Shown here: positions 19,529-60,168 of the stretch, in pieces | Layout: each line of letters starts with the position of its first letter | Numbering within the stretch: position 1 is the first letter of the stretch | Virus record (IMG/VR): IMGVR_UViG_2162886007_000107 | Coordinates: 172,431 to 236,430 of that record | DNA: 64,000 nucleotides | Direction: 5' to 3' (one strand) | Notes under the pieces: generated by a model | The model's database searches: none | The model's input: the letters and a program-made list of their open reading frames with translations, nothing else | Told to the model about the DNA's origin: nothing | Translations under genes and position numbers: made by a program

Positions 19529-19568
19529 CTTAACTCTTGAAAAAATTCAAACCTAGATTATTAGGGTA
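19529..19568 (+). promoter_or_regulatory. variant early promoter (CTTAACTC...CTAGATTATTAGGGTA)
   Basis: Same spacing of the TTAAC element and core as the canonical copies. Confidence 0.5.
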
Positions 19569-19586: not shown

Positions 19587-20186
19587 ATGAACATTAACGA
19601 ACTGCGCGTCGAAATTGTCAAAGAATTTTCCCCTGTATGGGAACTTAACGATAGAGCCCATCGAGTTGAACATTTTGAAGAAGTGTTCAACTGTGGTGTA
19701 GCAATCAACGAAAAGCTGAATCTGGGTTTCGATCCAAAGTTGATTCTCTTTGCTGCTTATTTCCACGATATGTTTGCGTGGAGTCGTAACAATCATCATG
19801 AACTCAGTTTTCACTGGATGATGTCTACGGATAACAAGTTGATTCTGGATAACTTGAATCCTCGTGAAACAATGATTGTGGCGTGGGGTTGTCAGCAACA
19901 TCGTGCTTCGTTTAAAGGCAACTTCAAAAGCGTGTTCTGCGAACTGATCAATTCTGCTGATCGTGGTTTTCCTGGTGACGTTGGGGCTATGTTGAATCGA
20001 GCTGTTCAATTCAGGGAGAAGAAATTTCCCGAGATGACACCGGGTGAACGTGTAGCAGGTGCTGTAAATCACCTGAAAGAAAAGTACGGTACTGGAGGTT
20101 ATGCTCGCTATACCGAAATGTATTTGGAAGTGTTCGGTGATCAGCTTTATCAACAGCGCGCTGATATAGACACTTTGCATTGTTAA
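19587..20186 (+). CDS. HD-domain phosphohydrolase
   Basis: H...H (AHRVEH), FHD, QHR and NSAD metal-binding pattern. Confidence 0.8.
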   Translation: MNINELRVEIVKEFSPVWELNDRAHRVEHFEEVFNCGVAINEKLNLGFDPKLILFAAYFHDMFAWSRNNHHELSFHWMMSTDNKLILDNLNPRETMIVAWGCQQHRASFKGNFKSVFCELINSADRGFPGDVGAMLNRAVQFREKKFPEMTPGERVAGAVNHLKEKYGTGGYARYTEMYLEVFGDQLYQQRADIDTLHC

Positions 20187-21893: not shown

Positions 21894-22517
21894 ATGAATC
21901 TGCAAGACATTGTGAACGCAACTCTCCTCGGCACTTTCCAAGGTAACCGTGAGGAATTTGCTCTCGACTGCTTTAAGAAGTACGAAGTTGAAGAACCGGC
22001 CTTGTTTCTCAAGAAGCACGTCTCTGTCAACCAGTGGTGGGTTCTTTGGTACATGGCAAAGAACGACGTAGACCGCTTCAAAGCAGCCATGGCCATCATG
22101 CCCCGTTGTAAGGAACTGGCTGCCGATCCAAAAGCCTTTCACTGGTTGCGTCGCCATTGCCAACAGCGTCTGGCTCTTCGTAACCGGATCAAACGCCAGT
22201 ACCAAGCACTGAAAGAAGGGGGTTCTGGCATACCGCTAGATGACATGGTGGAAAATGCGCTTGGGGAACGCATGACCAAGAAAGATAACTTTGAAACAGA
22301 AATCATCTTCCAGGCCGATCTGGTTCCTAAGCATCGTTTCAAGCTTACGGACATGCATGGAGGCAAAGGCGTGATCGTTAAGGTTATCCCTAATGATCAA
22401 CTCCCGAAAGACCGCAATGGCAAGGTTGCGGACATTACCCTCCACGACTACCCGTCTTCTCCGTTCCGTCGTCCTGAAGGCGACAGCTGGATTAGCAATC
22501 TTCCCCGCAAGAAATAA
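21894..22517 (+). CDS. NPxW-family protein fused to an RNA polymerase beta-like fragment
   Basis: VNQWWVLWYM in the N-terminal half; C-terminal FKLTDMHGGKGVIVKVIPNDQLPKDRNGKVADI. Confidence 0.7.
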   Translation: MNLQDIVNATLLGTFQGNREEFALDCFKKYEVEEPALFLKKHVSVNQWWVLWYMAKNDVDRFKAAMAIMPRCKELAADPKAFHWLRRHCQQRLALRNRIKRQYQALKEGGSGIPLDDMVENALGERMTKKDNFETEIIFQADLVPKHRFKLTDMHGGKGVIVKVIPNDQLPKDRNGKVADITLHDYPSSPFRRPEGDSWISNLPRKK

Positions 22518-23004: not shown

Positions 23005-24156
23005 ATGAACTTTATTACCGATACTGATCCAAGCCAAACGTTTTCAATTGTTACCACTATCAATGGTAGCGCCCAAGACATCCAGCGTTGCAACCTGGAC
23101 CTGATCCCACTCGTTGAACATCTGCTCGACGGGTTCCGTGAAGAAACCTCCCTCCGCCACTTCGTGGATGTGCAGGATCGTTTCTTTGTTGCGATCGAGA
23201 ACTCCACCGGTTTGGCGGTCGCATTGCTGGTGTTGACGAAGGAGACTGTAAAGTTTCTTTACGTACACAAGCCTTACCGTCGCCAGGGCCTGGCCACCAA
23301 ACTGTACAAGGAAGCAGTCGAGTATGGTGAAAAACAACCATACTTTGTTTTCATGTACAACCCTGTGGTAAAGGAGGCCGGGAAGTTCTTGACCTCTATC
23401 GGCGCGCTGGATGCCTTTTTGCAAGATTCAGCAGAAGGTGTGTCAGGCGGGAAAGTTCTCGTCCATACCCGTCGTGTCTATCTGAAGCCTGGCGGCTTAC
23501 ATCAACCAAAACACAAGCCTTGGGAGTTGCACGGTCTTCCGGTTAATGTGCATTTGGAGTTTTCTAGCCAGACTACAACTAACCTGAACGTCAAAACCCA
23601 GCTGGCAGAAATGATCAAGCTGTTGAAAGAAGAGGTCGGTGACACTGAAGCTACCACTGAACAAAATTATATTTTGGCAGTGGAGTACCCGAGCAATACT
23701 CCGATCGGTTTCCTTACAGCAGAACAGTCTTTTGCCTGCCGACGGTTAACCGGTGTTTGGATCAAGCCGGAATATCGTCGTAAGAACATTGCAACTGTTT
23801 TGGTTGCAACTCTTATTTCGTATGGCACCCTGGACGACGCCACCATGGCTGCTGTCGGTGTAAACAATTTGGCAGCTCGTGAGTTCTTTGGGTATGTTGG
23901 ATTTGAGCCCACCAATCTCAGTCCAAATAAACAAGAACAGTTTTACAGAATGACCAATGGGGATCTGAAACGCCAAGAGTACCTTTGTAAAGATCGTCAA
24001 ACAATCATCGACTCCAAGAGCTACGTGTATTGGGACGGTCCTGAAGAAGTAACTCTTGACGGCAGTTACAACCTGACTGAACTGAAGGCGCTTGTTCGTT
24101 TCATCGAGAACGGTGGTCCTGGTAAGGGTCACAAGAAACACGAAGAAATCTTTTAA
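23005..24156 (+). CDS. tandem GNAT acetyltransferase (two domains)
   Basis: Motif A twice: LYVHKPYRRQGLA and VWIKPEYRRKNIA. Confidence 0.8.
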   Translation: MNFITDTDPSQTFSIVTTINGSAQDIQRCNLDLIPLVEHLLDGFREETSLRHFVDVQDRFFVAIENSTGLAVALLVLTKETVKFLYVHKPYRRQGLATKLYKEAVEYGEKQPYFVFMYNPVVKEAGKFLTSIGALDAFLQDSAEGVSGGKVLVHTRRVYLKPGGLHQPKHKPWELHGLPVNVHLEFSSQTTTNLNVKTQLAEMIKLLKEEVGDTEATTEQNYILAVEYPSNTPIGFLTAEQSFACRRLTGVWIKPEYRRKNIATVLVATLISYGTLDDATMAAVGVNNLAAREFFGYVGFEPTNLSPNKQEQFYRMTNGDLKRQEYLCKDRQTIIDSKSYVYWDGPEEVTLDGSYNLTELKALVRFIENGGPGKGHKKHEEIF

Positions 24157-24166
24157 TAAACCTTAA

Positions 24167-24196
24167 TAGCAGAGTACCCCTAGGGGTACTCTGTTT
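24167..24196 (+). terminator. hairpin nearly identical to 4411-4440
   Basis: TAGCAGAGTACCCC-TA-GGGGTACTCTG. Confidence 0.65.
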
Positions 24197-24215
24197 CACT
24201 TTGAGAGTATTTTTT

Positions 24216-24911
24216 ATGAACGGCGAAATCCCTAAAGACTATCTGGCTATTCCTTTGCAAGAAGGTCGTACTGTTCGCAGTATCAACGTTGCTGTTATCC
24301 AAAAGGATTTCGGTGACATGCTCAAAGAGCAGCGTTATACCAACATGCATCATGCTCTTGTTTCTTTGTTTGTAATGCGTAATCAAGAAGTAGCTCCGAG
24401 CAATGAAGTTTTTGTTATTAGCGCGCTGGAGCATTACATCAAACACACCACCCACATTTATTTGGCTTTGACCGAAGAGAATGTGGTTATCGGCTATGCC
24501 TTGGCCGATAAAGCTTACGTACATGACATTTTTGTCGCAAAAGAATATCGTCGTGATCGCATCGGCATTAGCCTGGTCAACATGATCATGCACAAAAACC
24601 AGGAAGCCGAATACGTCAACTTCCTCAGCAAACGGGAAAAGAAAGAGCCTTGCGAAAGTTACTTCTTCAGTAAGCTTGAGGCCAGTCACCCGCACTGTGG
24701 ATACAACAACGATCATTTCAAGCATTCGCATCAAGTGGTTAACCAGGTCGCTCGTCGGGAAAAGGCCCGCAAAGAAATCACCGGACGTTTGGCTGTATTG
24801 GCTGCAGATTACGAGGTTGTCCAAGGTAAGGTTAAACTGGATGGCCTATTTAGTGTCAAACAATTGCACCTGCTCGCTGAATTGGCCGAGCTTGAAGAAG
24901 GAACGCGTTAA
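24216..24911 (+). CDS. GNAT acetyltransferase
   Basis: VIGYA...DIFVAKEYRRDRIG. Confidence 0.75.
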   Translation: MNGEIPKDYLAIPLQEGRTVRSINVAVIQKDFGDMLKEQRYTNMHHALVSLFVMRNQEVAPSNEVFVISALEHYIKHTTHIYLALTEENVVIGYALADKAYVHDIFVAKEYRRDRIGISLVNMIMHKNQEAEYVNFLSKREKKEPCESYFFSKLEASHPHCGYNNDHFKHSHQVVNQVARREKARKEITGRLAVLAADYEVVQGKVKLDGLFSVKQLHLLAELAELEEGTR

Positions 24912-25549
24912 TGGAATTTAAACACTTCAAACGAATTAAAGATCTGGTCGATGGTGAACTAGCTTTCTCCAATGGGTGGATGGATTATCGTCAGAAGCTA
25001 ATGTGCTTTGTAACTCGGCATGATGGTCTGGATCCGATTGAAGATCACCAATATGCTACAAACTATTTTGGTCAACTAATCCGTGGTTACGATATCAAAG
25101 ACGTCGTAATTGCTCTGGACGATAACGACGAGATCATCGGGTTTATCTGGGGCGACAATGGCGACATTGGTTTGGTGAAGGTTCCCCTAGCTTTGCGTCG
25201 TAAGCAGATCGCTACCAAAATGCTTAAACTGTATTTGGAGAAGACCGAGCCAAAAGCCGGTAAGTACGAATACTACTCTCACTGGTTCCATGAAGATGTA
25301 GGCCTGGCCAAGCTTTTTCTTGCACAAGGGTTTACTATCACCAGTATCCATGATGTCCAGTCGCCCACGCTGACTCGCATCATTGCAACCAAAGCAGCTC
25401 CTGATGATTTTCATGAGAAGCGTTTGGATGCTGCTGATCGTGGATATGTTGACTTCCGTGAGGATTATGCGGTGGTTGATGGTCATTACACGTTGGATCA
25501 ACTGGAGTCTCTGCTCGTGCTTGCACGTAAGGAACTGAAAGGTGGTTAA
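24911..25549 (+). CDS. GNAT acetyltransferase
   Basis: IIGFI...LVKVPLALRRKQIATKML...FLAQGF. Confidence 0.7.
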   Translation: MEFKHFKRIKDLVDGELAFSNGWMDYRQKLMCFVTRHDGLDPIEDHQYATNYFGQLIRGYDIKDVVIALDDNDEIIGFIWGDNGDIGLVKVPLALRRKQIATKMLKLYLEKTEPKAGKYEYYSHWFHEDVGLAKLFLAQGFTITSIHDVQSPTLTRIIATKAAPDDFHEKRLDAADRGYVDFREDYAVVDGHYTLDQLESLLVLARKELKGG

Positions 25550-26075
25550 GAATAACCAGTGGTTGGGTTCGTATTACAAAGTTCGGATGTTTCACAAGGA
25601 CGCTCTGTGTGAACGCACAAAGCAATTACTTTGTAATGCGTGGAATGACCTTACCAAACACGAAATGCGTCTGGTACTGCGTCACGAAGCCATTGCAAAG
25701 GTCTTTGAGCAACATGTCGGGGAACATACTTCATTTGGTCGTGATTCAGAGAAGTTCCATGCTTATTTGGCAGATGTGGAGTGGGTTTACATTATTGAAC
25801 GGATAGGTGTTCCTGGTGTCAGTGCTTTCATGGCTGTTACCAAGGATCAACAAATCCTTTCTCTATTTGTGGCTCCTCCATACCGCGGGAAGAAGCTAGG
25901 GACGTATCTGGTAAACAACCATCTGGAGATCTTCGGCAAGCCGGTGTCGTTGCAGTGCTTTAAGTTTAATGAACTAGCTTTAAAGTTCTACTCGTTCATT
26001 GGCTTCAAAGCCAGCTATGTGGCTAGCCGTGAAAATAATGGTGATCTGTATGACACACTGGTTCGTATGGTTTAA
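25542..26075 (+). CDS. GNAT acetyltransferase
   Basis: LFVAPPYRGKKLG...NELALKFYSFIGF; start could be ATG 25587. Confidence 0.8.
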   Translation: MVKNNQWLGSYYKVRMFHKDALCERTKQLLCNAWNDLTKHEMRLVLRHEAIAKVFEQHVGEHTSFGRDSEKFHAYLADVEWVYIIERIGVPGVSAFMAVTKDQQILSLFVAPPYRGKKLGTYLVNNHLEIFGKPVSLQCFKFNELALKFYSFIGFKASYVASRENNGDLYDTLVRMV

Positions 26076-26117
26076 CTTCTAGGCGGTCTTAAGCCTATAT
26101 TACTCCGGTGTATCAAT
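26071..26117 (+). promoter_or_regulatory. phiKZ-type early promoter
   Basis: TTTAACTTCTAGG-N11-CTATATTACTCCGGTGTATCAATG; core at 26096-26103. Confidence 0.8.
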
Positions 26118-27103: not shown

Positions 27104-27571
27104 ATGAACAAGGTGTTCGCAGTAATTGTTTTTGCTTTGGCTGGTAATGCATTTGCCGGTAGTGCTAACACAATCACTTGTGCTCAGTACGGTTATACCA
27201 ACAACCCTGACAACTTTGCTGATATACCGGTTGCTGCAAAGCAATCGGTATTTAAGGTTAACGACCTTACCGTATCGTTGGATGGGAAAGTTTACAAAGT
27301 GATCGATCCAGAAATGGTCGGTCTGGAAGGCCTCGCTGTCGTTTACAAAGACAGTAAAAATAACCAACTCCTCTATCTTTATATGAACGATAATGGGGAG
27401 AAGGAAATCGGGGTTTCCAATATACCGGAAGATTCTGATACTTTCTTCGGAGATAAAGGTGTGTACAAGCAGTGCACACTTACCGAGGATAAAGAGGATG
27501 CTTCTACCGAATCGGTACTTAGAACTGCGGGAGGAAGAGTTTCGACTACTCTCCCGGTTTACAGTTTTTAA
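27104..27571 (+). CDS. putative exported/periplasmic protein
   Basis: Signal peptide MNKVFAVIVFALAGNAFA; two Cys. Confidence 0.75.
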   Translation: MNKVFAVIVFALAGNAFAGSANTITCAQYGYTNNPDNFADIPVAAKQSVFKVNDLTVSLDGKVYKVIDPEMVGLEGLAVVYKDSKNNQLLYLYMNDNGEKEIGVSNIPEDSDTFFGDKGVYKQCTLTEDKEDASTESVLRTAGGRVSTTLPVYSF

Positions 27572-30572: not shown

Positions 30573-32210
30573 GTGATGTCTGATAACACTTTGCAATTTA
30601 TCACTCTCGATGAAACCAAACGTCTGGCCGAAGATGTGGTCAATGACGTCGAGCGTGCCGTTGTCGCGACCATGGGTCCGAACGGTCGCTTGTCCGTAAT
30701 TACTGTGGGCACTACACCTAAAGTAACCAAAGACGGTGTAACCGTAGCAAAAGGTCTGAAGTTCAACGATCCACGCAAGGAACTGATCAACAAGATCATT
30801 ACCGAACCGGCGATCAAAACCGACGAAGAATGTGGTGATGGCACCACCACTACCATCATGTTGATGGCACAGTTCTTCCGTGTGTATCGGGCCTTCCCAA
30901 GCTACCGTCAGCACGCGTTCATCGATGAAGTTACCAAAGCCTGGATCGAAGAACTGCGTCGCCTGAGCATCCAGCTGGAAGTGGATGATCCACGTCTGAT
31001 GCAAATGGCTCTGACCTCTTCGAACAACGATGCGGAAATGAGTCGTATCGTAGTAGATCTGTACCGTGGCAGTAAGGAACACTTCCCATCGATCGAACTG
31101 GTTTACGGCGTGGAAGATACCGACCGTGTGATTCACACCGACGGTCTGCGCATGAACATGGAACTGAGCAATCCTCAGTATGCAGGTAACACTGCCGGCA
31201 CCCTGACTCTGGATAATTACATCCCAGTTCTGGTAGATGGTTTCATCAAACCAGAAAACGTTCAGGAGCTGATTAAGTTCTGTGGTGAGATGACCAATCT
31301 GCATGGTGACTCTCCAGTTACTGTTGTGATCATTGCTCGTGCGCTGGAAACCCAGATCGATGGTGCCATCCTGAAACTGAATGCTCAGTTGAGACAGGCT
31401 GGCAAGAAGATCAGTTTCGCTGGTGTACGTACCAACCTGGGTGGTTCTCTGGGTAGCAACATCATGCAGGACATGGCGTGCATGCTGAACTCCAGCATGG
31501 TCAGTGATCTGGATCAAGCTTGCAGTGTTACGTGGGAAGTCAACAATGACCAGTTGACCATCACCAACAACAAAGCAATCCTGATCCCAACTGAGAAAGC
31601 TGCCACTCGTATCGAAGAACGCGTGGAAGAAATCCGCAAGGTCCTCGAAAACTACGATGCTCGTACTCGTTGGAGTCGTCGTGCTCGTTTCGACGAAGAT
31701 CGTCTGCGTAACCTGACTGGTGAAGTTGTCAACCTGTGGGTTGGTGGTGAAACTCAGTCGGAAGTCAAAGAACGTCATGCACGTTTTGAAGACGTTATCA
31801 AAGCGGTCAAGAGCGGTCTGGTTAACGGCATCCTTCCAGGTTGCGGTATCAGCCTGATCGAGAGCCTGGAAGTAGCAGGGGCCAAGTTCCTGAAAGAAGA
31901 AATGTCTGAAGAAGACCGTAGCTTCAAAACCGAAATCATCGGTGCACTGGTAGAAGTTTCTCGTCACCAGTACAAGTACCTGATGGAAAAGGTTTCCGAT
32001 GTTTACATGCAACGGAACGAAGAAGGTCGTCTGATGGTAACCAACCTGGCCACTGGCGAAAATGGTTCTCCAGAATCGTTGGGTGTGTTCGACACTGCTT
32101 ATGCGTCGATCACTGCGCTGAAGGGCGGTTCTCAAACTGCCAAGATCGTAGCGACCCTCGACTCGGTAATCATCAGTGACAAACTGACAACTGTGGCCGT
32201 ACAAGGCTAA
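30573..32210 (+). CDS. phage GroEL-like chaperonin (EL gp146 / OBP gp246 type)
   Basis: TMGPNG, TKDGVTVAK, EECGDGTTT, VGGETQSEVKER..RFED, GILPGCG, DTAYASITALKG. Confidence 0.95.
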   Translation: MMSDNTLQFITLDETKRLAEDVVNDVERAVVATMGPNGRLSVITVGTTPKVTKDGVTVAKGLKFNDPRKELINKIITEPAIKTDEECGDGTTTTIMLMAQFFRVYRAFPSYRQHAFIDEVTKAWIEELRRLSIQLEVDDPRLMQMALTSSNNDAEMSRIVVDLYRGSKEHFPSIELVYGVEDTDRVIHTDGLRMNMELSNPQYAGNTAGTLTLDNYIPVLVDGFIKPENVQELIKFCGEMTNLHGDSPVTVVIIARALETQIDGAILKLNAQLRQAGKKISFAGVRTNLGGSLGSNIMQDMACMLNSSMVSDLDQACSVTWEVNNDQLTITNNKAILIPTEKAATRIEERVEEIRKVLENYDARTRWSRRARFDEDRLRNLTGEVVNLWVGGETQSEVKERHARFEDVIKAVKSGLVNGILPGCGISLIESLEVAGAKFLKEEMSEEDRSFKTEIIGALVEVSRHQYKYLMEKVSDVYMQRNEEGRLMVTNLATGENGSPESLGVFDTAYASITALKGGSQTAKIVATLDSVIISDKLTTVAVQG

Positions 32211-48198: not shown

Positions 48199-49536
48199 TT
48201 AGACTTCTTCGATGATTGGTCTCCAACCAGCGTAGGTTTGAGTGCCGTTTAAAGCAACATACCAGCCAGCCAAAAGTTGACGGTTACCTGCGTTGTCAGC
48301 ATCGTTGTAGCCACGAACCAAATGAGCACTGTTACCAGTGATAATTTCCTGACACCAGGTCATTACACCAGCGCCTGCTGAGGTAGCTTTACTGGTAGAA
48401 AGCCCCAGTTCAGCATCCGTGTAAGCAGCCCAACGTGGATAAGCTTGCACCTCTGGCTGATTCAACGATACACCGCCGTATACGGGGTATATGAGGTCGT
48501 TAAACGAACCACCTGTGGCAATGGTGCCATAACCAGCAGGCTCGCTAGCAGCGCCTGTAGGAAGCCTCAGGGTATGTGCTTTACCATTGATCTGGAACTG
48601 TGTCGTCCCTTTGGTAATACCCAAATTATTCATTGCTTCCCATGTCATGCCATGACGCAGAGCTTTCTTCGGCATGTACACAGTCTTGCCTTTATAACGA
48701 TACTTCAACCAGGTGGTGTTAGCATTCGTTACAGAACCAATGGAACCCATACCAACCAAGGACGTCAGTGCAGCAACAGTAATGAAGTCTGCTTCAGCTA
48801 CTTCCCCATAGAACAAATCTTCAGGAGGAAGTTCACCAATGAATTCCAACACAGGACGGAAGCCATAAACATCCAACGTACCTTGTCCGTTACCTTCACT
48901 AGCATTAGCGTCATTGATAATGGTGTGCCGGGCAATTGGATTAAGACTTGTGCCAGCAGAGTAATCCCAGCCACGAGCAGACAAAGCAGTAGTAATGCTG
49001 GTATGTTGGTTTTTACATACCGAGATCACACCTCTTTGTCCAATCAAGTTGGGCGCTGTTAGCAAACCTAGATCTCCTGCGGTGTAATACGACCACACAT
49101 CAGCAGAAGGACGATCGGGAGCAGAAAAAATTGGCCACAGATATTGATCCCACTCACCGCCACCGTTGTTGTTCAGGATGGAAGAGAAAGGGTCAATAGA
49201 CATACCAGACATCAGACGGACCTTGTAACCTAATCCGCCGATAAGAACTTGCTTACCTGTCAGCAAAGAAGCTGCCTTTAAAGCAGCGACTGTTGTGCCA
49301 TAACGCAATGGTTTACGTGCAATGTAAAACGTCTTGCCTGCATCGATGTATTTCAACCAACCAGCTTTATCGTTGATCGGTGTCCCAGAGGTCAAGTTTA
49401 ACAAACTAGCCAATGCAGGACCATCAATCAGATCATCAGAACTCACCCATCCTTGGAATGGTTTACCTGCCACTACGGCAGGAGGGACAAACGGGAGCAC
49501 TCCGGTACTCCCAACAGAAATCAATTGTTCTATCAT
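48199..49536 (-). CDS. virion structural/putative receptor-binding protein, two GWRP domains
   Basis: MIEQL start; WLKY...GKT...P...; GFRPVLE and GWRPIIE. Confidence 0.75.
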   Translation of the reverse strand: MIEQLISVGSTGVLPFVPPAVVAGKPFQGWVSSDDLIDGPALASLLNLTSGTPINDKAGWLKYIDAGKTFYIARKPLRYGTTVAALKAASLLTGKQVLIGGLGYKVRLMSGMSIDPFSSILNNNGGGEWDQYLWPIFSAPDRPSADVWSYYTAGDLGLLTAPNLIGQRGVISVCKNQHTSITTALSARGWDYSAGTSLNPIARHTIINDANASEGNGQGTLDVYGFRPVLEFIGELPPEDLFYGEVAEADFITVAALTSLVGMGSIGSVTNANTTWLKYRYKGKTVYMPKKALRHGMTWEAMNNLGITKGTTQFQINGKAHTLRLPTGAASEPAGYGTIATGGSFNDLIYPVYGGVSLNQPEVQAYPRWAAYTDAELGLSTSKATSAGAGVMTWCQEIITGNSAHLVRGYNDADNAGNRQLLAGWYVALNGTQTYAGWRPIIEEV

Positions 49537-49546
49537 GAAATGGCAC

Positions 49547-50008
49547 CTATGCCGCCATAGCAACAGGCTTTGGCAAAGTTGGATTCTTAACGATACGGTA
49601 CACGTTAACACCGGCCATGATTACTTTCTTCTTCCATGGGGTTACTTCTAGCACATCCATTGACTCTTTCAAGATAGCGTCAATTTCTTTGCGTGTAACC
49701 GGTACTCTGGTTTCAACTCCATTTACCAACTCAATGATGTAGTAAGTAGTACAGAGCTTGTCATGCAAAGTGGTGCATTGAGTGTACTCGCCAATCGGAG
49801 GAAGCAACCACCACAGCCAACGTGGGATAGTAGCGCCATCCGTTTGAAAGCCTGTCTCAACAGTGACGTAGCGTTTGGAGTTCTCTACGCCAATGTAATA
49901 ATTAAACCCAGGAACAGTGTCCCAAAGATCCTTCTTATTAATCGCGCTCGCAAGTTTGTTGTAACGCAACTGCTCTTCAGCGCTAAACCGTGTGAATGCG
50001 CTCATCAT
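49547..50008 (-). CDS. DUF1353-like protein
   Basis: VTVETGFQTDGATIPRWLW...LHDKLC...RKEIDAIL. Confidence 0.75.
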   Translation of the reverse strand: MMSAFTRFSAEEQLRYNKLASAINKKDLWDTVPGFNYYIGVENSKRYVTVETGFQTDGATIPRWLWWLLPPIGEYTQCTTLHDKLCTTYYIIELVNGVETRVPVTRKEIDAILKESMDVLEVTPWKKKVIMAGVNVYRIVKNPTLPKPVAMAA

Positions 50009-50729: not shown

Positions 50730-51386
50730 TTACGCGGTGAAGAAATCTTCTTCTGTTGGCAGGGTCGGAAGTTCTTCAATGGTGGTGGCGTCACGAGCAG
50801 CGTCTTTCACGTCCCAAGTTTTCTTGTAGCCAAGGTTAGCAGCAGTAAATGCGGCGTTAGCCACTTCTACCATTTCAGCTGCACTGATGTCTACCACAAC
50901 GTTTTCATAGACGCGGAACGAGAAGGTTTGTTCGACGTTTGCTTCCACCATTTCTTTAGCAATGATGCGCAACCCAGTCAAGTTAGCGCGGTCGGCATTG
51001 CGAATCTGAACGTGATAAACGTTCTCGCCGAAAGTGTGAGGGAAGCCACGATCGAACATAGCGATACGCATGGTTTCAGCCTGAGTCTGCAACAGAGCTT
51101 TAGCGGTAGCCAGTTTCTCGGCCATCTCGACTTCACTGAAAGTACGAGAAATCCAAGTCTGACGCCATTCGCCATTAACTTCTTCAGGTGGGCCTTCAGT
51201 TACAACATCATTCACTGGAGGAGAAACTTCGGTCACAACTTCCAAGCCGAACTCGATCAGAATTTCAGCAGTGCTGGTTGGACCAAAAGAAGTATTCGGT
51301 GCAAAGGCCGACAGATCGGTCAGGAACAACGGATACGTGCCGGATTCAGAATGGATCAGGCGGGTTTGACGGGTTACTGTGGTCAT
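50730..51386 (-). CDS. tail fibre assembly-like protein (DUF4376-like C-terminus)
   Basis: VTEGPPEEVNGEWRQTW; QIRNADRANL...FRVYENVVVDISAAEM. Confidence 0.65.
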   Translation of the reverse strand: MTTVTRQTRLIHSESGTYPLFLTDLSAFAPNTSFGPTSTAEILIEFGLEVVTEVSPPVNDVVTEGPPEEVNGEWRQTWISRTFSEVEMAEKLATAKALLQTQAETMRIAMFDRGFPHTFGENVYHVQIRNADRANLTGLRIIAKEMVEANVEQTFSFRVYENVVVDISAAEMVEVANAAFTAANLGYKKTWDVKDAARDATTIEELPTLPTEEDFFTA

Positions 51387-51398
51387 GAATTGTTCTCC

Positions 51399-52304
51399 TT
51401 ACAGAACTAGTTCAAAGAGTGGACGCCAGCCGTGTTGAGGGTGTACTGCGGCTGTAGTCAGGCTGACGTTAAGCAAATCGGGGTTTGTCCCGCTACCACG
51501 GTTAATGCAAGTACTGGTTTGCAAGTCTGTGGAGAAGGTAATCCATCCGGCGTTAGCAATGTCATCCATTTGCCGGATACCCAATGTATCTGGATATGCG
51601 CGTGCTTGGAAAACATAAGGAAGAATCAGATCGTATTCGCCACCAACCTGATCAGCTGCCGCACCACTGGTACTGGACATTACTGCACGAGACGTAGGTA
51701 CTCGCATGATGAAAGAATGGTCACCCTTCGTTACTCCTTTGGCTTGAGGGATAGTACCAAAGGTAGTTTTAGCGTAGGGAGCCCAATCCGCACTTGGGAA
51801 GTTACCGTAGATCACACCGGCACGATACAACAGCTCCCAGGTCAGGTTGGTATAGATAGCCTGGCTTGCGATAAAGAGGATCTTCCCTTTATACACAAAC
51901 TTAAACCAACCTAGGTTAACGTCGGTGTTCTCGGTAGCAGAGCTAGGAATAGTTCCGACAAAGTTTTTACACTCTTGGGTCGTGAACAAATCAGACATTG
52001 CAAGTTTGCCGAAATAACCGAAGTTCCAATCACCACGATTAAGTACCTGAGGTCCCGGACCGGTGTATGGCATGTAAGCCAATGCCTTGTTTGGTGTCAA
52101 AGCTACGTCGGTTCCTTTACGAGAAGCTACGCGATAGTAGTACAGCTGATTACGTACCGCGGTATCGTCTGTGTAGGTCAGAGTGCCGCCGGGAACGACT
52201 ACCAATGGAGCTGGTAACGCGCCATCAGCAATCGGCGAAGCAGACCGATAGATCGTGTAATCATCAGCCGCATTTGAATCGGTCCAATCAATTTTGACGG
52301 GCAT
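51399..52304 (-). CDS. virion protein: FN3-like N-terminus plus GWRP domain
   Basis: IDWTD...YTIYRS...YYYRV; GPGP..L..GD..FGYFG; GWRPLFEL. Confidence 0.75.
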   Translation of the reverse strand: MPVKIDWTDSNAADDYTIYRSASPIADGALPAPLVVVPGGTLTYTDDTAVRNQLYYYRVASRKGTDVALTPNKALAYMPYTGPGPQVLNRGDWNFGYFGKLAMSDLFTTQECKNFVGTIPSSATENTDVNLGWFKFVYKGKILFIASQAIYTNLTWELLYRAGVIYGNFPSADWAPYAKTTFGTIPQAKGVTKGDHSFIMRVPTSRAVMSSTSGAAADQVGGEYDLILPYVFQARAYPDTLGIRQMDDIANAGWITFSTDLQTSTCINRGSGTNPDLLNVSLTTAAVHPQHGWRPLFELVL

Positions 52305-55259: not shown

Positions 55260-56516
55260 TTAAGGGACTAATTCGAGTACCGGTCTCCAGCCATAACCAG
55301 CATGAGTGGTGTTAGCGATCTGGTACCATACGCCAAGGAATCCAGGATAACCGCGTGTCAACCATCCACCATTAGCACTGTTGGCTTCTTGGCACAAGGT
55401 CAGCTCGCCGTTGCCTGTACTACCAGTCCAACCAACATCAGTATTGGTAAGAGAGTCCCAACGATCAGCAGCTTGTCCCGAATAGTTGACAGTAACGCGG
55501 GAGAAGTAACTGTTATATTCACCACCAGCCGTAGCGCCTGGGTTAGAGGTCGCGCCTGTCATTAAACGAACTTTGTAGTTAAGCCCACCAATGTTAACAA
55601 CCTTCGTACCGTTAACAGCGCCAACGGCATTCAGTTGCTCATATGTAATCGCACCGAAGAAAGGAGTCTTGGCAATGTAGAACGTTTTGCCGTTGTCAAC
55701 AAACTTCAGCCAACCACCGTCCGGTTGGATAGATACTTTACCGGTGTTAGTAACACCAAGAAGGTTGTACAACGCCAGACCACCAATTAAGTTAGCTGCC
55801 GTTACTACACCTCTATAAGGAGATGGAGGAATGGTAGATTTCTTAACAAGTACTGGACGCCAACCGTAATACGTCTGCGGGTTATTAGGCGGCATGTTCC
55901 AGATACCCATGATAGGGTGGTTACCACTGGAATTCTGCCAGTCATTGCCTCGCAAACAATAACCGTTAGCTAAAGTCTCGGCGCAAATAGTGAAAACACC
56001 ATCGCCAAGGTCGGCTCCTCCTGGAGCACCAAGTCCTAACATTGTTCTTGTGTAGTTACCCCAAATGGGGGCTCCACTAATGCCACCACGGTCAGAGTTA
56101 TCATAGATCGCATACATGTAGCGATTCCACTCACCCCCAGCGTTGGACGGCACTGCATTTGCAGAAGAAGAAATTGCACCTGTCATCATTCGACAGATGT
56201 AAACCTCCCCTCTGATAGTAATCTCTTTGGCACCATTGTTGGTGGCCTGCATGATTTGTTCGTAAGTAGTCGCGTAACGAATCGGCTTCTTAGCGATAAG
56301 CAGTTCTAGTCCGCTGTCTTCAATGAAATGAAGCCAACCACCATCCCTATTCATTGTTGCGCCGGGAGTTAACCCGATAAGTGTAGCGAGGGCATCACCA
56401 TAAATAAAGTCAGCTGACTTTGTTATTCCTTTAAACGGAGTCCCTTCCGGAAAAGGTATGTCGGAATTGTCATCAGCTCCCTGTTTATATCCGGTCCCAA
56501 TCAGAGCTTCGATCAT
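55260..56516 (-). CDS. virion protein, two GWRP domains (paralog of 48199)
   Basis: MIEAL start; GWRPVLV and GWRPVLEL. Confidence 0.75.
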   Translation of the reverse strand: MIEALIGTGYKQGADDNSDIPFPEGTPFKGITKSADFIYGDALATLIGLTPGATMNRDGGWLHFIEDSGLELLIAKKPIRYATTYEQIMQATNNGAKEITIRGEVYICRMMTGAISSSANAVPSNAGGEWNRYMYAIYDNSDRGGISGAPIWGNYTRTMLGLGAPGGADLGDGVFTICAETLANGYCLRGNDWQNSSGNHPIMGIWNMPPNNPQTYYGWRPVLVKKSTIPPSPYRGVVTAANLIGGLALYNLLGVTNTGKVSIQPDGGWLKFVDNGKTFYIAKTPFFGAITYEQLNAVGAVNGTKVVNIGGLNYKVRLMTGATSNPGATAGGEYNSYFSRVTVNYSGQAADRWDSLTNTDVGWTGSTGNGELTLCQEANSANGGWLTRGYPGFLGVWYQIANTTHAGYGWRPVLELVP

Positions 56517-56586: not shown

Positions 56587-59500
56587 TTACGGAACTACAG
56601 CGCCCGCTGCACCGACCCACTCAACACCATCCCAGGTGAAGGTAATGAAGGTACGGCTACCAGTCAACGATGGAGGAGCACCAGTGTTCCATACCAGAGC
56701 CGTAGCACCAGTAGGAGCAAAGGTGATCGCACCAGTTGCACCATTGATCTTGAACACCAGTACCTTGGCACGAACAGGACCTTTCGGACCATCGCTCAGG
56801 GTAATGGTTTTAGCAGTGGCTGCAGTGTTGGTGATAACAATGAATTGATCCACCAGCGCATCGACAGTACCAGTCGCAGACAGAGTCTTGATTGGCAGGT
56901 CGTACTGGTTGAACTCGATCCATTGGCTGTTCTTGTACACGTAGGTCTTGCCGTCGTTACCGCCAACAGGACCAGAGATGCCAGACGAAGGTGCGGTGTA
57001 AACCACCCAGGTCTTGTCACCTTTACGAAGGTACAGATTGCTGTCTGTCGGAACATCAGCAAAGCCAGGTACAAACGCATTGATCTGCGCCTGGATTTTA
57101 CCGAACGCCTGGATCACCGTGTCAGCAGCAGCGATCGCGCTGTTGGTTGCCAAGCTCAAACCAGTCAGAGGCGTCGAACGAACACGAGCCTGAGTGAAGT
57201 AGAGGTTAGTAGTACCCTCCACAACAGCATCAGTGGTGCCAGGCGAAGCCACCAGCTGGATGTACGCGGAACCAGACCAGCGATACTGAACGTTGGTGTT
57301 GAGGGCGATGTAGATTTTGCCAGTTTCACCAGTAGCCGGGAAGGCTGCAAGGTTGGCAAACTCCAGCACGTCATCAACGTAGCTTGGCAATTGGCTTGCA
57401 GGAACGAAACCGTTAACCAGCGTAGCAACCGACACACCCAGTTCTGCGACAGGAACACCACCCAAGCTCATGAGAGTCGGAGGCTGGTATTTCAACCAGT
57501 CACCGTTATCAGCACCTTCGGTACGAGTACGCATGTACGGGAAACCGTCATCAGGCACGTCGTCCTGAATTGCAGCGGGCACCCAGTTACCGCCCAGACG
57601 CACAACTTTGCCCAGAGACAGCAGTGGCGAGTTAACGTCACCAGCAACCAGACGACCCCACAGTACCCAGCCATCAGTAGCCGTCTTATAAAAGACGTTG
57701 AAGGTAGCCGAGATAGCCCAGTCGCCAACACGACCAGAGAAGGTATCGGAAGGAGCATCCATGCCAGCAGGCAGAGTCAACCAACGGCTACCCTGATCAC
57801 CTTTAACACCAGGCTTACCAGGCAGGCCTTCACCAGGAGGACCTTCTTTACCCTCAGGACCACGGAACTCACCAACGTCTTTCCAGTCGGTAATGCTCGG
57901 AGCCCAAATAACCAGGTGACCGTTTTCCAACATGTAAGCGTCGGTCTGGGTACCGGTAGGGTGAGCAGCACGCAATGCGGCCATGTCTGCGAAGGTGTCT
58001 TTGATGGCTACGGTCGCGCCAGGATCGCCCTGGATACCTTTACCGCCATCAGGACCTACAAAGTCAAACGGACCGTTGTACTGACCATCGACAACAACAT
58101 AAACCTGCTTGTCGTCCAGAGTCTGCCAGCCGTCGCCTTCTTCAGCAAAACCATCGCCTTCACCGATTGGAGGAAGTGCCGCCAGGTTTTCAACAACGCC
58201 ACGCAGTTTGAGCGGAGTACCGTTCTTACCGATGTCACCTTGTTGACCCTGGAACTTACCCGCATTCTGCCAAACGTTTTCGACGTTCACCCAGACAAAC
58301 TTGTCGAGATCGACGTAAGCTTTGCCTTTGGTGATATCGGTGGCTGGAGGAATGGTCTGATCTTCTTCGGTCAGGATCTTGATGATGTCGAGGGATTTAC
58401 CATCTTTACCATCAGTACCTTTGAAGCTACCCATCTTCAGCCAGGAGCTGCCGATGTAAGCGTACAGAGCGTTTTCATCCTGTACCGAGTACACCCACTG
58501 ATCTTGCGGGCTAGCCGGCAAGTCAGCAAAGGTCGCCACAACACCACGCAGATAAATGGACTGGCCGTCAGCACCTTTAAGCGAAGTATTGAAGTCAGCT
58601 TCAGATCCAGAGTTACCCAGATCCAACCAGTTTTGGTAAGCGGACTTACCATCAGCGCCTTTGAAAGGACCGAGGTCTTTCCAGCCACCACCCGAAGTGC
58701 TCCAGACCCACAGACGATGAGTGGAGTTAACCACGTATGCGTCTTGATCCTGAGGAGAAGGAATGGCTTGAAGTGCTGCGTCATCGGCTACGGAGCCTTT
58801 GATTTGCAGGTTCTTACCGTCTTCACCATCAGCGCCTTTCTGAGCAATCCAGTAATCTGCTTCAGTCTTGCCATTGTTTTCTGGCAGGGTCAGCCAGTAG
58901 GCAACAGCGTTAAGACCAGGATCACCTTGGAGACCTGGTTCACCTTTGAACTCACCCAGGCGAACCCAAGCGGCGTTGATGTAACCGTAAATCGAGTTAT
59001 CTGCACGTACAGCCCAGATATCCTGTTCTTCAGGTTCAGCAGGCAGATCACCGACGGTGTTAACTGCGCCCTTCAGGATCAGGCTTACACCAGGAGTACC
59101 GTCGATACCTTGGAAGCGACCCAGGTTTACCCATGCATCGACAATCCACATCCAGACGGTGCTGGTGTCTTGGACGGCCCAAGCATCCTGATCGGCAGGA
59201 GAGGCAGGTAATGCAGACTGAGTAGCCACGGCGCCTTTGATAATGACGTTACGACCGTCAGTACCGTCTTCACCTGGTTCCCCGTCTTTACCGTTGAATT
59301 TGCCCAGGTCTTTCCAGACAGCATCTACTTCAACGTATACCCACAGGTGGGACGTATCACGCAGAACGTAAGCGGCCTGGTCATCCTTAGGCTTGGTGTC
59401 GAGTTCGGCAGCATTAGCAACCGTACCAAGGATCTGGAGGTTTTTACCAGGGATGCCCTGATCGCCTTTGGTGGACTCTTGCCATTCTTCAATGGTCTTG

Positions 59501-60168
59501 TTTTCGTTACCAGGAATTTTCTTCCAGGTTGCGAAGGCGTCGTCACCAGGGTTACCTTTCAGACCGCGTTGAGCCTCGATGAACTCAGCTTCGGTCTTGT
59601 TCTCGTTACCTGGCTGACGTTTCCAGATATCGTAGTTGGATTCACCGGCAGGACCACGGATACCCAGTGCTTCCCATTTCTGGGTGTCATCACTTGGAAC
59701 CAATACGTGGATGTCGTGTTGCCAGATGTAAGCATCACCGATTTCATTCTCGGTAATTTCTGGCAGTTCGAGGTTGTCAGGCCAGGTACCCAGGAGGTTC
59801 AAACCATTCTTACCACGCAGGCTACCGGAGCTAGCCCATTCAGTACCGTTCCATACACGCAGAGAGAACTCCACGAAGTAAGCAGTACCTACTTTCAGAC
59901 CTACGGTAGGAATGGCATTCAGTTCGTCTTCGTCACGCAGCTCACCCTTGAGGATGATACCGCCTGTAGCTAGACCCTGAATGATTTCGTACAAGTAACG
60001 AGTACGTGCATCCAAGACACGAGCCTGGAAGTTAGCAGCACCCAAGCCATCAGCACCACCACGGACCTTTACGCCAGTGACAAGAGCCGGAAGGTGTTCT
60101 ACCCACAATGCCTCTTCGGCAATAGCAGGCAACTCACCAGGAGTTACAGAATCATCATCGATAGCCAT
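56587..60168 (-). CDS. long tail fibre-like protein with collagen G-X-Y repeats
   Basis: N-terminal W...GG.DG.AN.QA..L..RT.YL; about 10 repeated ~45-aa modules separated by GXY runs. Confidence 0.85.
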   Translation of the reverse strand: MAIDDDSVTPGELPAIAEEALWVEHLPALVTGVKVRGGADGLGAANFQARVLDARTRYLYEIIQGLATGGIILKGELRDEDELNAIPTVGLKVGTAYFVEFSLRVWNGTEWASSGSLRGKNGLNLLGTWPDNLELPEITENEIGDAYIWQHDIHVLVPSDDTQKWEALGIRGPAGESNYDIWKRQPGNENKTEAEFIEAQRGLKGNPGDDAFATWKKIPGNENKTIEEWQESTKGDQGIPGKNLQILGTVANAAELDTKPKDDQAAYVLRDTSHLWVYVEVDAVWKDLGKFNGKDGEPGEDGTDGRNVIIKGAVATQSALPASPADQDAWAVQDTSTVWMWIVDAWVNLGRFQGIDGTPGVSLILKGAVNTVGDLPAEPEEQDIWAVRADNSIYGYINAAWVRLGEFKGEPGLQGDPGLNAVAYWLTLPENNGKTEADYWIAQKGADGEDGKNLQIKGSVADDAALQAIPSPQDQDAYVVNSTHRLWVWSTSGGGWKDLGPFKGADGKSAYQNWLDLGNSGSEADFNTSLKGADGQSIYLRGVVATFADLPASPQDQWVYSVQDENALYAYIGSSWLKMGSFKGTDGKDGKSLDIIKILTEEDQTIPPATDITKGKAYVDLDKFVWVNVENVWQNAGKFQGQQGDIGKNGTPLKLRGVVENLAALPPIGEGDGFAEEGDGWQTLDDKQVYVVVDGQYNGPFDFVGPDGGKGIQGDPGATVAIKDTFADMAALRAAHPTGTQTDAYMLENGHLVIWAPSITDWKDVGEFRGPEGKEGPPGEGLPGKPGVKGDQGSRWLTLPAGMDAPSDTFSGRVGDWAISATFNVFYKTATDGWVLWGRLVAGDVNSPLLSLGKVVRLGGNWVPAAIQDDVPDDGFPYMRTRTEGADNGDWLKYQPPTLMSLGGVPVAELGVSVATLVNGFVPASQLPSYVDDVLEFANLAAFPATGETGKIYIALNTNVQYRWSGSAYIQLVASPGTTDAVVEGTTNLYFTQARVRSTPLTGLSLATNSAIAAADTVIQAFGKIQAQINAFVPGFADVPTDSNLYLRKGDKTWVVYTAPSSGISGPVGGNDGKTYVYKNSQWIEFNQYDLPIKTLSATGTVDALVDQFIVITNTAATAKTITLSDGPKGPVRAKVLVFKINGATGAITFAPTGATALVWNTGAPPSLTGSRTFITFTWDGVEWVGAAGAVVP

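Follow-up and report, generated by a model that had tools for sequence, protein, structure and literature searches.

The window analyzed here, i.e., the whole stretch of 64,000 nucleotides (nt), makes up the final 64 kb of the 236-kb (236,430-bp) phage record IMGVR_UViG_2162886007_000107 in IMG/VR. Between positions 23005 and 26075, its plus strand carries four co-oriented and tightly packed open reading frames (ORFs), here called A, B, C, and D, which encode five domains of the GNAT (GCN5-related N-acetyltransferase) superfamily (Table 1). The origin from a phage, assumed in the original prediction from the letters alone, was borne out; gene content and gene order point to an uncultivated relative of Pseudomonas phage EL, from soil or rhizosphere and probably belonging to the phiKZ group.

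The genes of the array follow one another closely. The stop codon of the preceding gene (up1) lies 3 nt ahead of the start of A, the stop codon of B and the start codon of C overlap in the sequence TAATG, and C and D overlap by 8 nt; B, C, and D are probably translationally coupled. For B, public gene calls take the ATG at 24216 (231 residues) as the start, not the TTG at 24201. D has a conserved N-terminal extension of 80 residues. All five copies of motif A that the original prediction listed are present (Table 1), in genes that are indeed consecutive and mutually divergent, with 19-30% identity between domains over their aligned parts.

Table 1. Positions of the array genes, their domains, and neighboring features (numbering of the window unless a contig is named)
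Feature	Position	Strand	Remarks
Gene A, 383 aa	23005-24156	+	tandem GNAT protein with C-terminal tail module
A, N-terminal GNAT (~aa 22-140)	23068-23424	+	motif YRRQGLA at aa 91-97
A, second GNAT (~aa 181-317)	23545-23955	+	motif YRRKNIA at aa 257-263
A, tail module (aa 318-383)	23956-24153	+	
Gene B, 231 aa	24216-24911	+	GNAT core match ~24414-24614; motif YRRDRIG at aa 111-117
B, hypervariable linker (~aa 140-185)		+	
B, degenerate tail	~24768-24908	+	
Gene C, 212 aa	24911-25549	+	divergent GNAT; core ~25103-25336; motif LRRKQIA at aa 95-101
C, C-type tail	~25388-25546	+	
Gene D, 177 aa	25542-26075	+	core ~25785-26009; motif YRGKKLG at aa 114-120
Perfect palindrome	24171-24194	+	11-bp arms (CAGAGTACCCC TA GGGGTACTCTG); in the 59-nt spacer between A and B
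Promoter-like motif	19530-19563	+	TTAACT, ~17-18 nt, ACCTAgATTAT; nearest copy upstream of the array
Promoter-like motif	26072-26103	+	TTAACT, 18 nt, TATATT, with AGCCTATATTAC; immediately past D
Promoter-like copies in the window	6418, 19552, 26094, 30524, 33800, 46437, 60871	+	
up1, 143 aa	22570-23001	+	N-terminal signal peptide; conserved left neighbor of the array
Predicted membrane protein, 70 aa	26162-26374	+	hydrophobic; conserved right neighbor of the array
GroEL-like chaperonin (Cpn60_TCP1), 544 aa	~30576-32210	+	Cpn60-type; ~4.5 kb downstream of the array
X gene with stand-alone tail gene	L017:14-813; L022:4328-5159; L023:1-890; L030:4264-5171		other jumbo-phage contigs

Four Adjacent Genes Encode GNAT Domains

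Gene A matched Pfam Acetyltransf_1 in two separate stretches, one in each half (E = 1.7e-17, 64.2 bits; cut-off 20.7), D matched the same family (2.6e-7, 31.3 bits; cut-off 20.7), and B matched Acetyltransf_10 (6.9e-6, 26.5 bits; cut-off 23.6). PHROG and NCBIfam matches also backed the GNAT identity of the array. On its own, C fell below the Pfam threshold (Acetyltransf_10, 0.0095, 16.4 bits; cut-off 23.6), and in a genome-wide search it matched PF13673 at 7.4e-4. We nevertheless regard C as a GNAT, because its 51% identical orthologue in the related contig L019 has GNAT Pfam matches, because hhalign aligned both its core and its tail with the profile of the A C-terminal family (probability 84%, E = 7e-6), and because canonical loops (RRKGIG or QNQGVG) are found in its orthologues. 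B aligned with the same family at a probability of 94.6%.

The concentration of these domains is not due to chance, since all four PF00583 matches and all five PF13673 matches of the 236,430-bp genome fall in this 3.07-kb stretch. Below the cut-off, a weak Acetyltransf_7 match (E = 4e-4, 18.7 bits) was seen in a 78-residue ORF on the plus strand at genome positions 51350-51481, outside the window, which may be a GNAT fragment or a chance match. In an AlphaFold2 model of A, the C-terminal half was predicted with a pLDDT (predicted local distance difference test) of 76-91, and a Foldseek search of the PDB with the model returned GNAT structures, tandem GNATs among them, at 4e-7 and a probability of 1.00. 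Thus, the array genes encode GNAT-superfamily domains, and the modeled C-terminal half of A has a GNAT fold.

A, B, and C Share a C-Terminal Module

A, B, and C end in a common C-terminal module of 45-60 residues, which is missing from D. Its consensus is Y-x-V/I-x-W/F ... (V)TLDG-x-F/Y ... L ... L, and copies of the A type extend as RF(M/I)ENGGPG...H..L. The module is complete in A, and B and C carry shortened, degenerate versions. In the source genome, a profile of the tail matched A, B, and C only. Modeled by itself with 18 sequences, the tail folded confidently (pLDDT 86), with the order alpha-beta-beta-alpha-beta.

Searches for relatives of the tail returned no family in Pfam or PHROG, nothing usable in the ESM Atlas, and no Foldseek match at E < 1 in the PDB or the AFDB clusters. 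TonB/TolA C-terminal domains recurred in the Foldseek output at probabilities below 0.1, and the best result of an exhaustive VIA structure search was the EpoB docking domain (Z = 3.9, 52 of 62 residues), which we regard as a lead and not as a match. Among cultured phages, the tail profile found no convincing match in phiKZ, 201phi2-1, OBP, Lu11, or EL, the sole match in EL being weak and partial (E = 0.006). A scan with the A-type tail alignment added one further contig.

The tail also occurs outside GNAT proteins. In four other jumbo-phage contigs, a stand-alone tail gene of 52-106 residues directly follows a gene for a conserved 190-213-residue protein, here called X, which is not a GNAT; the X family had no match in Pfam or PHROG and no homologue in the source genome. 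In L010, a related contig, a C-type tail stands alone as a 56-residue gene, with 66% identity to the tail of C. The tail thus behaves as an autonomous, portable module, since it is confined to A, B, and C in the genome, folds by itself, and occurs as a separate gene. It probably serves, as a small domain, in protein docking or targeting.

The Array Is Ancestral to a Clade of Phages and Is Mosaic

Homologues of the array are very rare: 11 representatives were found in a set of 1.8 billion proteins, and 6 clusters in another of 5.8 billion. No relatives came out of IMG/VR pattern scans with A or D, and a metagenome scan with the D family gave 6 loci only, most of them known already. The long contigs bearing homologues (107-244 kb) are phage-like, and other metagenomic phage contigs of 235-244 kb repeat the order A-B-C-D at the corresponding site, with a homologue of EL gp136 on one side and a 70-residue membrane protein on the other. 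The four genes of L019 (238.7 kb) encode 221, 238, 210, and 178 residues, with identities of 28% for the N-terminal half of A, 31% for B, 51% for C, and 66% for D. The corresponding lengths are 211, 180, 203, and 166 residues in L021 (243.7 kb), 210, 180, and 166 in L015 (242 kb), and 215, 56, and 166 in L010, where the 56-residue gene is the tail of C only. All four genes are present in L005 and L006, two assemblies with 91.7% nucleotide identity to the window. Orthologues of C (51% identity in L019, 38% in L021) have canonical loops, and D, whose orthologues share 33-66% identity, is the most widely conserved member of the array.

In a maximum-likelihood tree of the GNAT cores, D, the N-terminal domain of A, B, and C each formed one group, with support of 71-94%. 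The five domain labels required 4 changes on this tree, the smallest number possible, against a mean of 13.6 after shuffling, and orthologues were closer to each other than paralogues were. Because the tree groups the domains by gene and needs so few label changes, the paralogues predate the divergence of these phages. On this sequence evidence the array is vertically inherited and ancestral to a small clade of uncultivated, EL-related jumbo phages of soil and rhizosphere, and a recent expansion in a single phage was rejected in view of the orthologous arrays in distant relatives. All four genes are under purifying selection: the ratios of nonsynonymous to synonymous substitution rates (dN/dS) relative to L005 were 0.10 for A, 0.17 for B, 0.06 for C, and 0.075 for D. 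Since they are still under constraint, the array genes are functional, as enzymes or otherwise.

At the same time, the locus is a mosaic. The fusion that produced A is lineage-specific, its halves being carried by relatives as single-domain proteins. In L020, an indoor-metagenome allele of A, the first GNAT is 93% and the tail ~85% identical to that of the window. Its second GNAT core shares only 26% identity and is most similar (49%) to a gene of another phage; i.e., the inner GNAT core has been swapped in this allele. Gene B has a hypervariable segment (Table 1) between conserved flanks. In L006, a single TTG to TAG change at position 2553 (equivalent to ~23624 in the window) was also seen, which splits A between its GNAT domains into ORFs of 206 and 158 residues; in the other assembly of nearly identical sequence, A is intact. 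The array may have arisen by an old tandem duplication, two of whose GNATs would later have been fused into A in the source sub-lineage, and remodeling would be continuing through cassette exchange, domain loss, and tail loss.

How exceptional such an array is can be judged from cultured phages of the phiKZ group. PF00583 matches numbered four in 201phi2-1 (two of them adjacent), four in Lu11 (two over the cut-off), two in EL, one in OBP, and none in phiKZ; in view of these counts, several GNATs per jumbo phage are normal. The original prediction of an expansion unusual for one phage was therefore overstated, the array being ancestral to a clade and multi-GNAT phages being known in the group, although five contiguous domains together with a C-terminal module of their own do lie at the upper end, as a variant of a known theme. 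EL itself has one GNAT at this site rather than four genes: gp137, which lies at the syntenic position between gp136 and gp139, the EL counterparts of genes in the window, and is nearest to the GNAT type of the second half of A. A second EL protein, gp152, is the only homologue of D in a cultured phage (24% identity over 93% of its length), but it is encoded ~10 kb away, past the chaperonin. Both are annotated as acetyltransferases (Elvirus) and come from the same group as the source phage, and unlike A, B, and C they lack the C-terminal tail.

A Probable Role in Protein Acetylation

We favor the reading that the array encodes protein acetyltransferases acting in host takeover, to which we would assign a probability of about one half. 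The enzymes would then be of the RimI/Naa/YjaB/Rac type, catalyzing acetyl-CoA-dependent N-acetylation of proteins during infection, and each paralogue would have its own substrate, either a phage protein or a component of the host machinery for transcription or translation. In this scheme the acyl donor and the protein substrates, like the time of expression and the tail's role, are our inference.

Protein acetylation is favored because the nearest characterized relatives are protein acetyltransferases. Searched against the PDB, the A-type profile matched RimI (9mto, 1.4e-8), Ard1/Naa10, Naa30, and VipF, the neighbors of RimI or Ard1/Naa10 type also including 4pv6 (1.5e-6) and 5isv, and the D-type profile matched YjaB (2kcw, 4.2e-8), PaiA, Naa50, and Naa60. 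In NCBIfam, rimI (TIGR01575) was the top match for A and the sole match for B, and the best match for D was the YjaB-type PRK10514 (9.6e-7, 28.8 against a family cut-off of 134). With scores of 36.1 bits for A, 19.4 for B, and 18.8 for D, all below the equivalog cut-off of 86.4 bits, TIGR01575 is to be taken as the nearest relative and not as a family to which they belong. The top Foldseek results for A included Naa40, RimI, Ard1, and tandem GNATs. RimI and Ard1/Naa10, the best neighbors of the A-type family in profile and fold, are small single GNAT domains that act on proteins, although identity is only ~13-17% and RimI has neither the C-terminal module nor the tandem architecture. Escherichia coli YjaB, the best PDB and NCBIfam neighbor of D, has been reported to be a protein lysine acetyltransferase; D differs from it in its 80-residue N-terminal extension and in its loop (RGKKLG, compared with RGCGVG in YjaB).

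There are also precedents among phages. Jumbo phages carry numerous GNATs, some of which, in the phiKZ group, are closest to GNATs for ribosomal proteins, and these enzymes have been proposed to modify host proteins in the manner of Rac or to work like the ribosomal-protein enzymes (PMC7824862). Rac of phiKMV-like phages is a GNAT that leads to cleavage of the α subunit of the host RNA polymerase (RNAP) (PMC7552054). Like the members of the array, Rac is a small phage-encoded GNAT; it acts in host takeover and serves as the functional model in PMC7824862. Unlike the array it is a single gene, and when A and D, but not B and C, were used as tblastn queries against 50,697 phage records, no Rac-like sequence was found, A giving no match and D matching only 9 EL-like records. 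Phages of the phiKZ group transcribe with their own RNAPs, which makes the logic of targeting host RNAP in the manner of Rac weaker here.

Several observations weigh against a set of active protein acetyltransferases. The similarity to RimI, YjaB, and Naa proteins lies far below the family cut-offs in every case, the substrate class of a GNAT is unreadable at such sequence distances, and polyamine and aminoglycoside acetyltransferases occur in the same hit lists as RimI and YjaB. Our search of the literature found no biochemical characterization of the array family, EL gp137, or EL gp152. The N-terminal GNAT of A was poorly modeled by AlphaFold2 (pLDDT ~50-60). One plant-metagenome RNA-seq library contained short contigs that match up1, A, B, and the 70-residue gene, possibly through carry-over of DNA. 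Finally, the central glycine of the motif A loop is replaced in four of the five domains, by Asn in the second domain of A, Arg in B, Gln in C, and Lys in D, and in the second domain of A, C, and D this loss is confined to the source phage and its 92% identical relative. Because four of the five loops lack the glycine, coenzyme A (CoA) binding or turnover may be impaired in these domains.

The canonical pyrophosphate loop of motif A is Q/R-x-x-G-x-G/A, and one of the five domains, the N-terminal domain of A, conforms to it (RRQGLA). The first Arg and the last Gly or Ala are present in all five loops. The glycine is present in most orthologues of A's second domain (L015 and EL gp137 have His) and in all those of C and D. 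In B, the central glycine is replaced by Arg in all orthologues: the loop RRDR[ILV][GA] is conserved in distant ones, and the close relative L005 has RQDRIG. B also lacks the usual "GF" of motif B, and C lacks the Tyr of "FY". Some domains of the array, B above all, may be non-catalytic partners.

Alternative Functions

If most of the domains have lost catalysis, they could serve as binding or scaffold subunits, for instance as decoys or as substrate adaptors working with the one canonical domain, at the N terminus of A. This would account for the four deviant loops, the family-wide Arg of B, and the residues missing from B and C, together with the purifying selection that nevertheless acts on the genes, and the predicted translational coupling of B, C, and D would suit it. 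A further point in its favor is that A is a tandem GNAT, with fold matches to 2wpw and VipF, and in tandem GNAT proteins one half is often non-catalytic. The tandem GNATs 2wpw/2wpx, from the clavulanic-acid pathway, and Legionella VipF (7wx6/6wqb) resemble A in having two GNATs per chain, with fold matches over more than 310 columns, and the combination of a canonical and a deviant CoA loop in A recalls their pairs of active and inactive domains. However, the model of A superimposed poorly on them (root-mean-square deviation ~20-22 Å, TM-score ~0.3), which does not support a common domain arrangement, and the fusion in A is recent. Moreover, a residue other than Gly at the central position of motif A need not by itself abolish CoA binding, which is carried out by backbone amides, and the fully canonical loops in orthologues of C and D imply that these families were ancestrally enzymes. 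We consider this explanation quite unlikely. Acetylation of small molecules, such as polyamines, amino-sugars, antibiotics, or other metabolites, is also rather unlikely. DpA, PaiA, diamine acetyltransferases, AAC(6')-Ih, and AAC(3)-XI were found at E-values only slightly weaker than those of RimI and YjaB, and such enzymes might aid DNA packaging by tuning the polyamine pools, or detoxify compounds in soil hosts. Yet there is no obvious rationale for four to five different enzymes of this kind in one phage operon and there are no biosynthetic or transport genes nearby, and the docking-type tail, which also occurs as a separate small protein, fits the targeting of macromolecules better.

The original prediction had proposed a diversified acetylation arsenal against host proteins or defenses, citing AcrVA5, the GNAT that inactivates Cas12a, and the GNAT toxins that acetylate aminoacyl-tRNA. 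In a defense-directed form, the paralogues would acetylate and inactivate host immune proteins, and an arms race with several defense systems would have diversified them. The fast-changing, accessory side of the locus agrees with this idea: its content varies among related phages (two to four genes, with tails lost or alone), the core of A has been swapped within one lineage (26% identity inside flanks of 93% and ~85%), and B has its hypervariable linker, a pattern typical of host-interaction and counter-defense loci. AcrVA5, too, has a GNAT fold, is encoded by a mobile element, and acts on a host protein, but it is a single domain without a tail, and no Cas12a context is known for the array. 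The specific links to AcrVA5 and to the tRNA toxins did not hold up: neither was among the PDB matches of the A-type and D-type profiles, PADLOC found no matches, and no neighbor resembles an antitoxin. AcrVA5 was also missing from the profile lists at E ≤ 0.1 and from the top 50 fold matches, in libraries whose content was not checked for AcrVA5. D is conserved out to EL and strong purifying selection acts on all four genes, which a housekeeping function in infection would fit at least equally well, and phages of the phiKZ group shield their DNA in a protein shell, which leaves less need to counter DNA-targeting defenses. On balance, an anti-defense arsenal seems unlikely. Very improbable are aminoacyl-tRNA-acetylating toxins of the TacT/AtaT/ItaT type, which would shut off host translation, or Mom-like modifiers of nucleic acids. 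The fold class and the small size of D (177 residues) are compatible with either, and phage Mu offers a precedent in a GNAT-fold enzyme that modifies DNA using charged tRNA (PMC13219725, PMC7261163). However, TacT, AtaT, KacT, and Mom were absent from the PDB profile matches of the A-type and D-type families, and the flanking genes, for a secreted protein and a membrane protein, include no ribbon-helix-helix or other antitoxin-like neighbor; no DNA-binding Pfam domain was found in the flanking ORFs. A toxin-antitoxin module in particular was rejected, there being neither an antitoxin nor kinship to known toxins.

A more far-reaching proposal, which we regard as doubtful, is that in EL-like jumbo phages the tail is a portable docking domain of a kind not described before, one that links varied effectors to one partner or compartment, which would make the array a set of targeted protein modifiers with exchangeable cassettes. 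The effectors would be several GNATs in the source phage and the separate neighbor X in others, and the ribosome, the phage chaperonin, and the import route of the phage nucleus are candidate docking partners. The swap of the inner GNAT core next to a constant tail would then reflect an arms race that changes the catalytic or substrate end and leaves the address label fixed.

Transcription Signals

A bipartite promoter-like element (TTAACTT, ~17 nt (17-18), ACCTAnATTAC(T)nnGGT) occurs in 13 copies in the genome, all on the plus strand, all intergenic, and with conserved flanks. In the window, its core motif was seen 7 times (1.4 expected), a number reached in none of 100 shuffled sequences. 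The element resembles features annotated as "putative phage promoter" in EL; for the motif containing TATATTAC, a match to the phiKZ early-promoter consensus could not be confirmed from the literature. Since the cluster lies between the copies at 19552 and 26094, the GNAT genes probably close a transcription unit of ~19.55 to 26.09 kb, which would start ~3.5 kb upstream of them. The palindrome between A and B is predicted to fold, as RNA, with an energy of -22.1 kcal/mol (z = -4.2; none of 200 shuffled sequences was equally stable) and is not followed by a clean T-run. It is possibly a terminator, an attenuator, or an RNA-stability element.

The first gene past the upstream promoter-like motif encodes a 199-residue protein (19587-20186, plus strand) that strongly matches phrog_3921 (function unknown) and has a weak HD-domain match (PF01966, 0.0011). 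Two genes upstream of A, a 207-residue ORF (21894-22517, plus strand) matches an internal piece of RNAP β over residues 126-187 (phrog_3295, 5.6e-15) and shows a weak match to PF00562 (Rpb2_6). It is the fastest-evolving ORF of the neighborhood (72.5% amino acid identity and dN/dS 0.20 relative to L005, the adjoining genes being 99-100% identical) and could be an RNAP-fragment-like accessory protein or decoy.

Genomic Setting

The kinship with EL, and probably with the phiKZ group, rests on several features: a GroEL-like chaperonin, which is a hallmark of EL-type phages, an RNAP β-like ORF of 739 residues (23.2 bits, just at the cut-off), a tubulin-like ORF of 348 residues (22.6 bits, under the cut-off of 33), virion paralogues, and gene-by-gene synteny of the region with EL gp132-gp146, including gp136-gp139 and gp145-gp146. 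Near-identical sequence is present in soil, rhizosphere, plant, groundwater, and indoor metagenomes. When the 50,697 phage records were searched with the nucleotide sequence of the locus, and by tblastn with gene A, there were zero matches in both cases, and because of this we consider the phage to be very distant from cultured phages. The virion-structural-type paralogues of phrog_1062 (phiKZ-type) lie on the minus strand at 48202-49611 and 55263-56516, next to a gene for a 1193-residue tail fiber protein (56590-60168, minus strand), in an order comparable to that of EL gp155-gp156.

The conserved left neighbor of the array, up1, is a homologue of EL gp136 (29% identity, E = 4e-16), and homologues of it precede the GNAT array in L010, L013, L015, L019, and L021. 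Together with a second signal-peptide protein (27104-27571, plus strand), a homologue of EL gp139, up1 brackets the region, and both are probably secreted or periplasmic phage proteins, as their signal peptides suggest. On the right, genes of 70-73 residues directly follow the D orthologue in L010, L015, L019, and L021, and those of L010 and L015 are 56% identical. BLAST gave no match between the 70-residue gene of the window and these counterparts, so that their homology rests on position and size alone.

Significance

Phage GNATs such as Rac and AcrVA5 are among the few known enzymatic tools of host takeover and anti-defense, and nearly all GNATs of jumbo phages are uncharacterized. Should the proteins of the array be ordinary or inactive acetyltransferases, their description would amount to routine annotation. 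The main interest of the locus lies in its unexplained tail module, its cassette swapping, and the systematic loss of the glycine from its CoA loops. It offers a natural series, comprising five domains with one canonical and four deviant loops, canonical orthologues, fused and split forms of A, and swapped cores, which could reveal how protein-modifying enzymes diversify in phages. The tail, a small and confidently folding domain without known relatives, would, if it is an address label, provide a handle on targeting in nucleus-forming phages.

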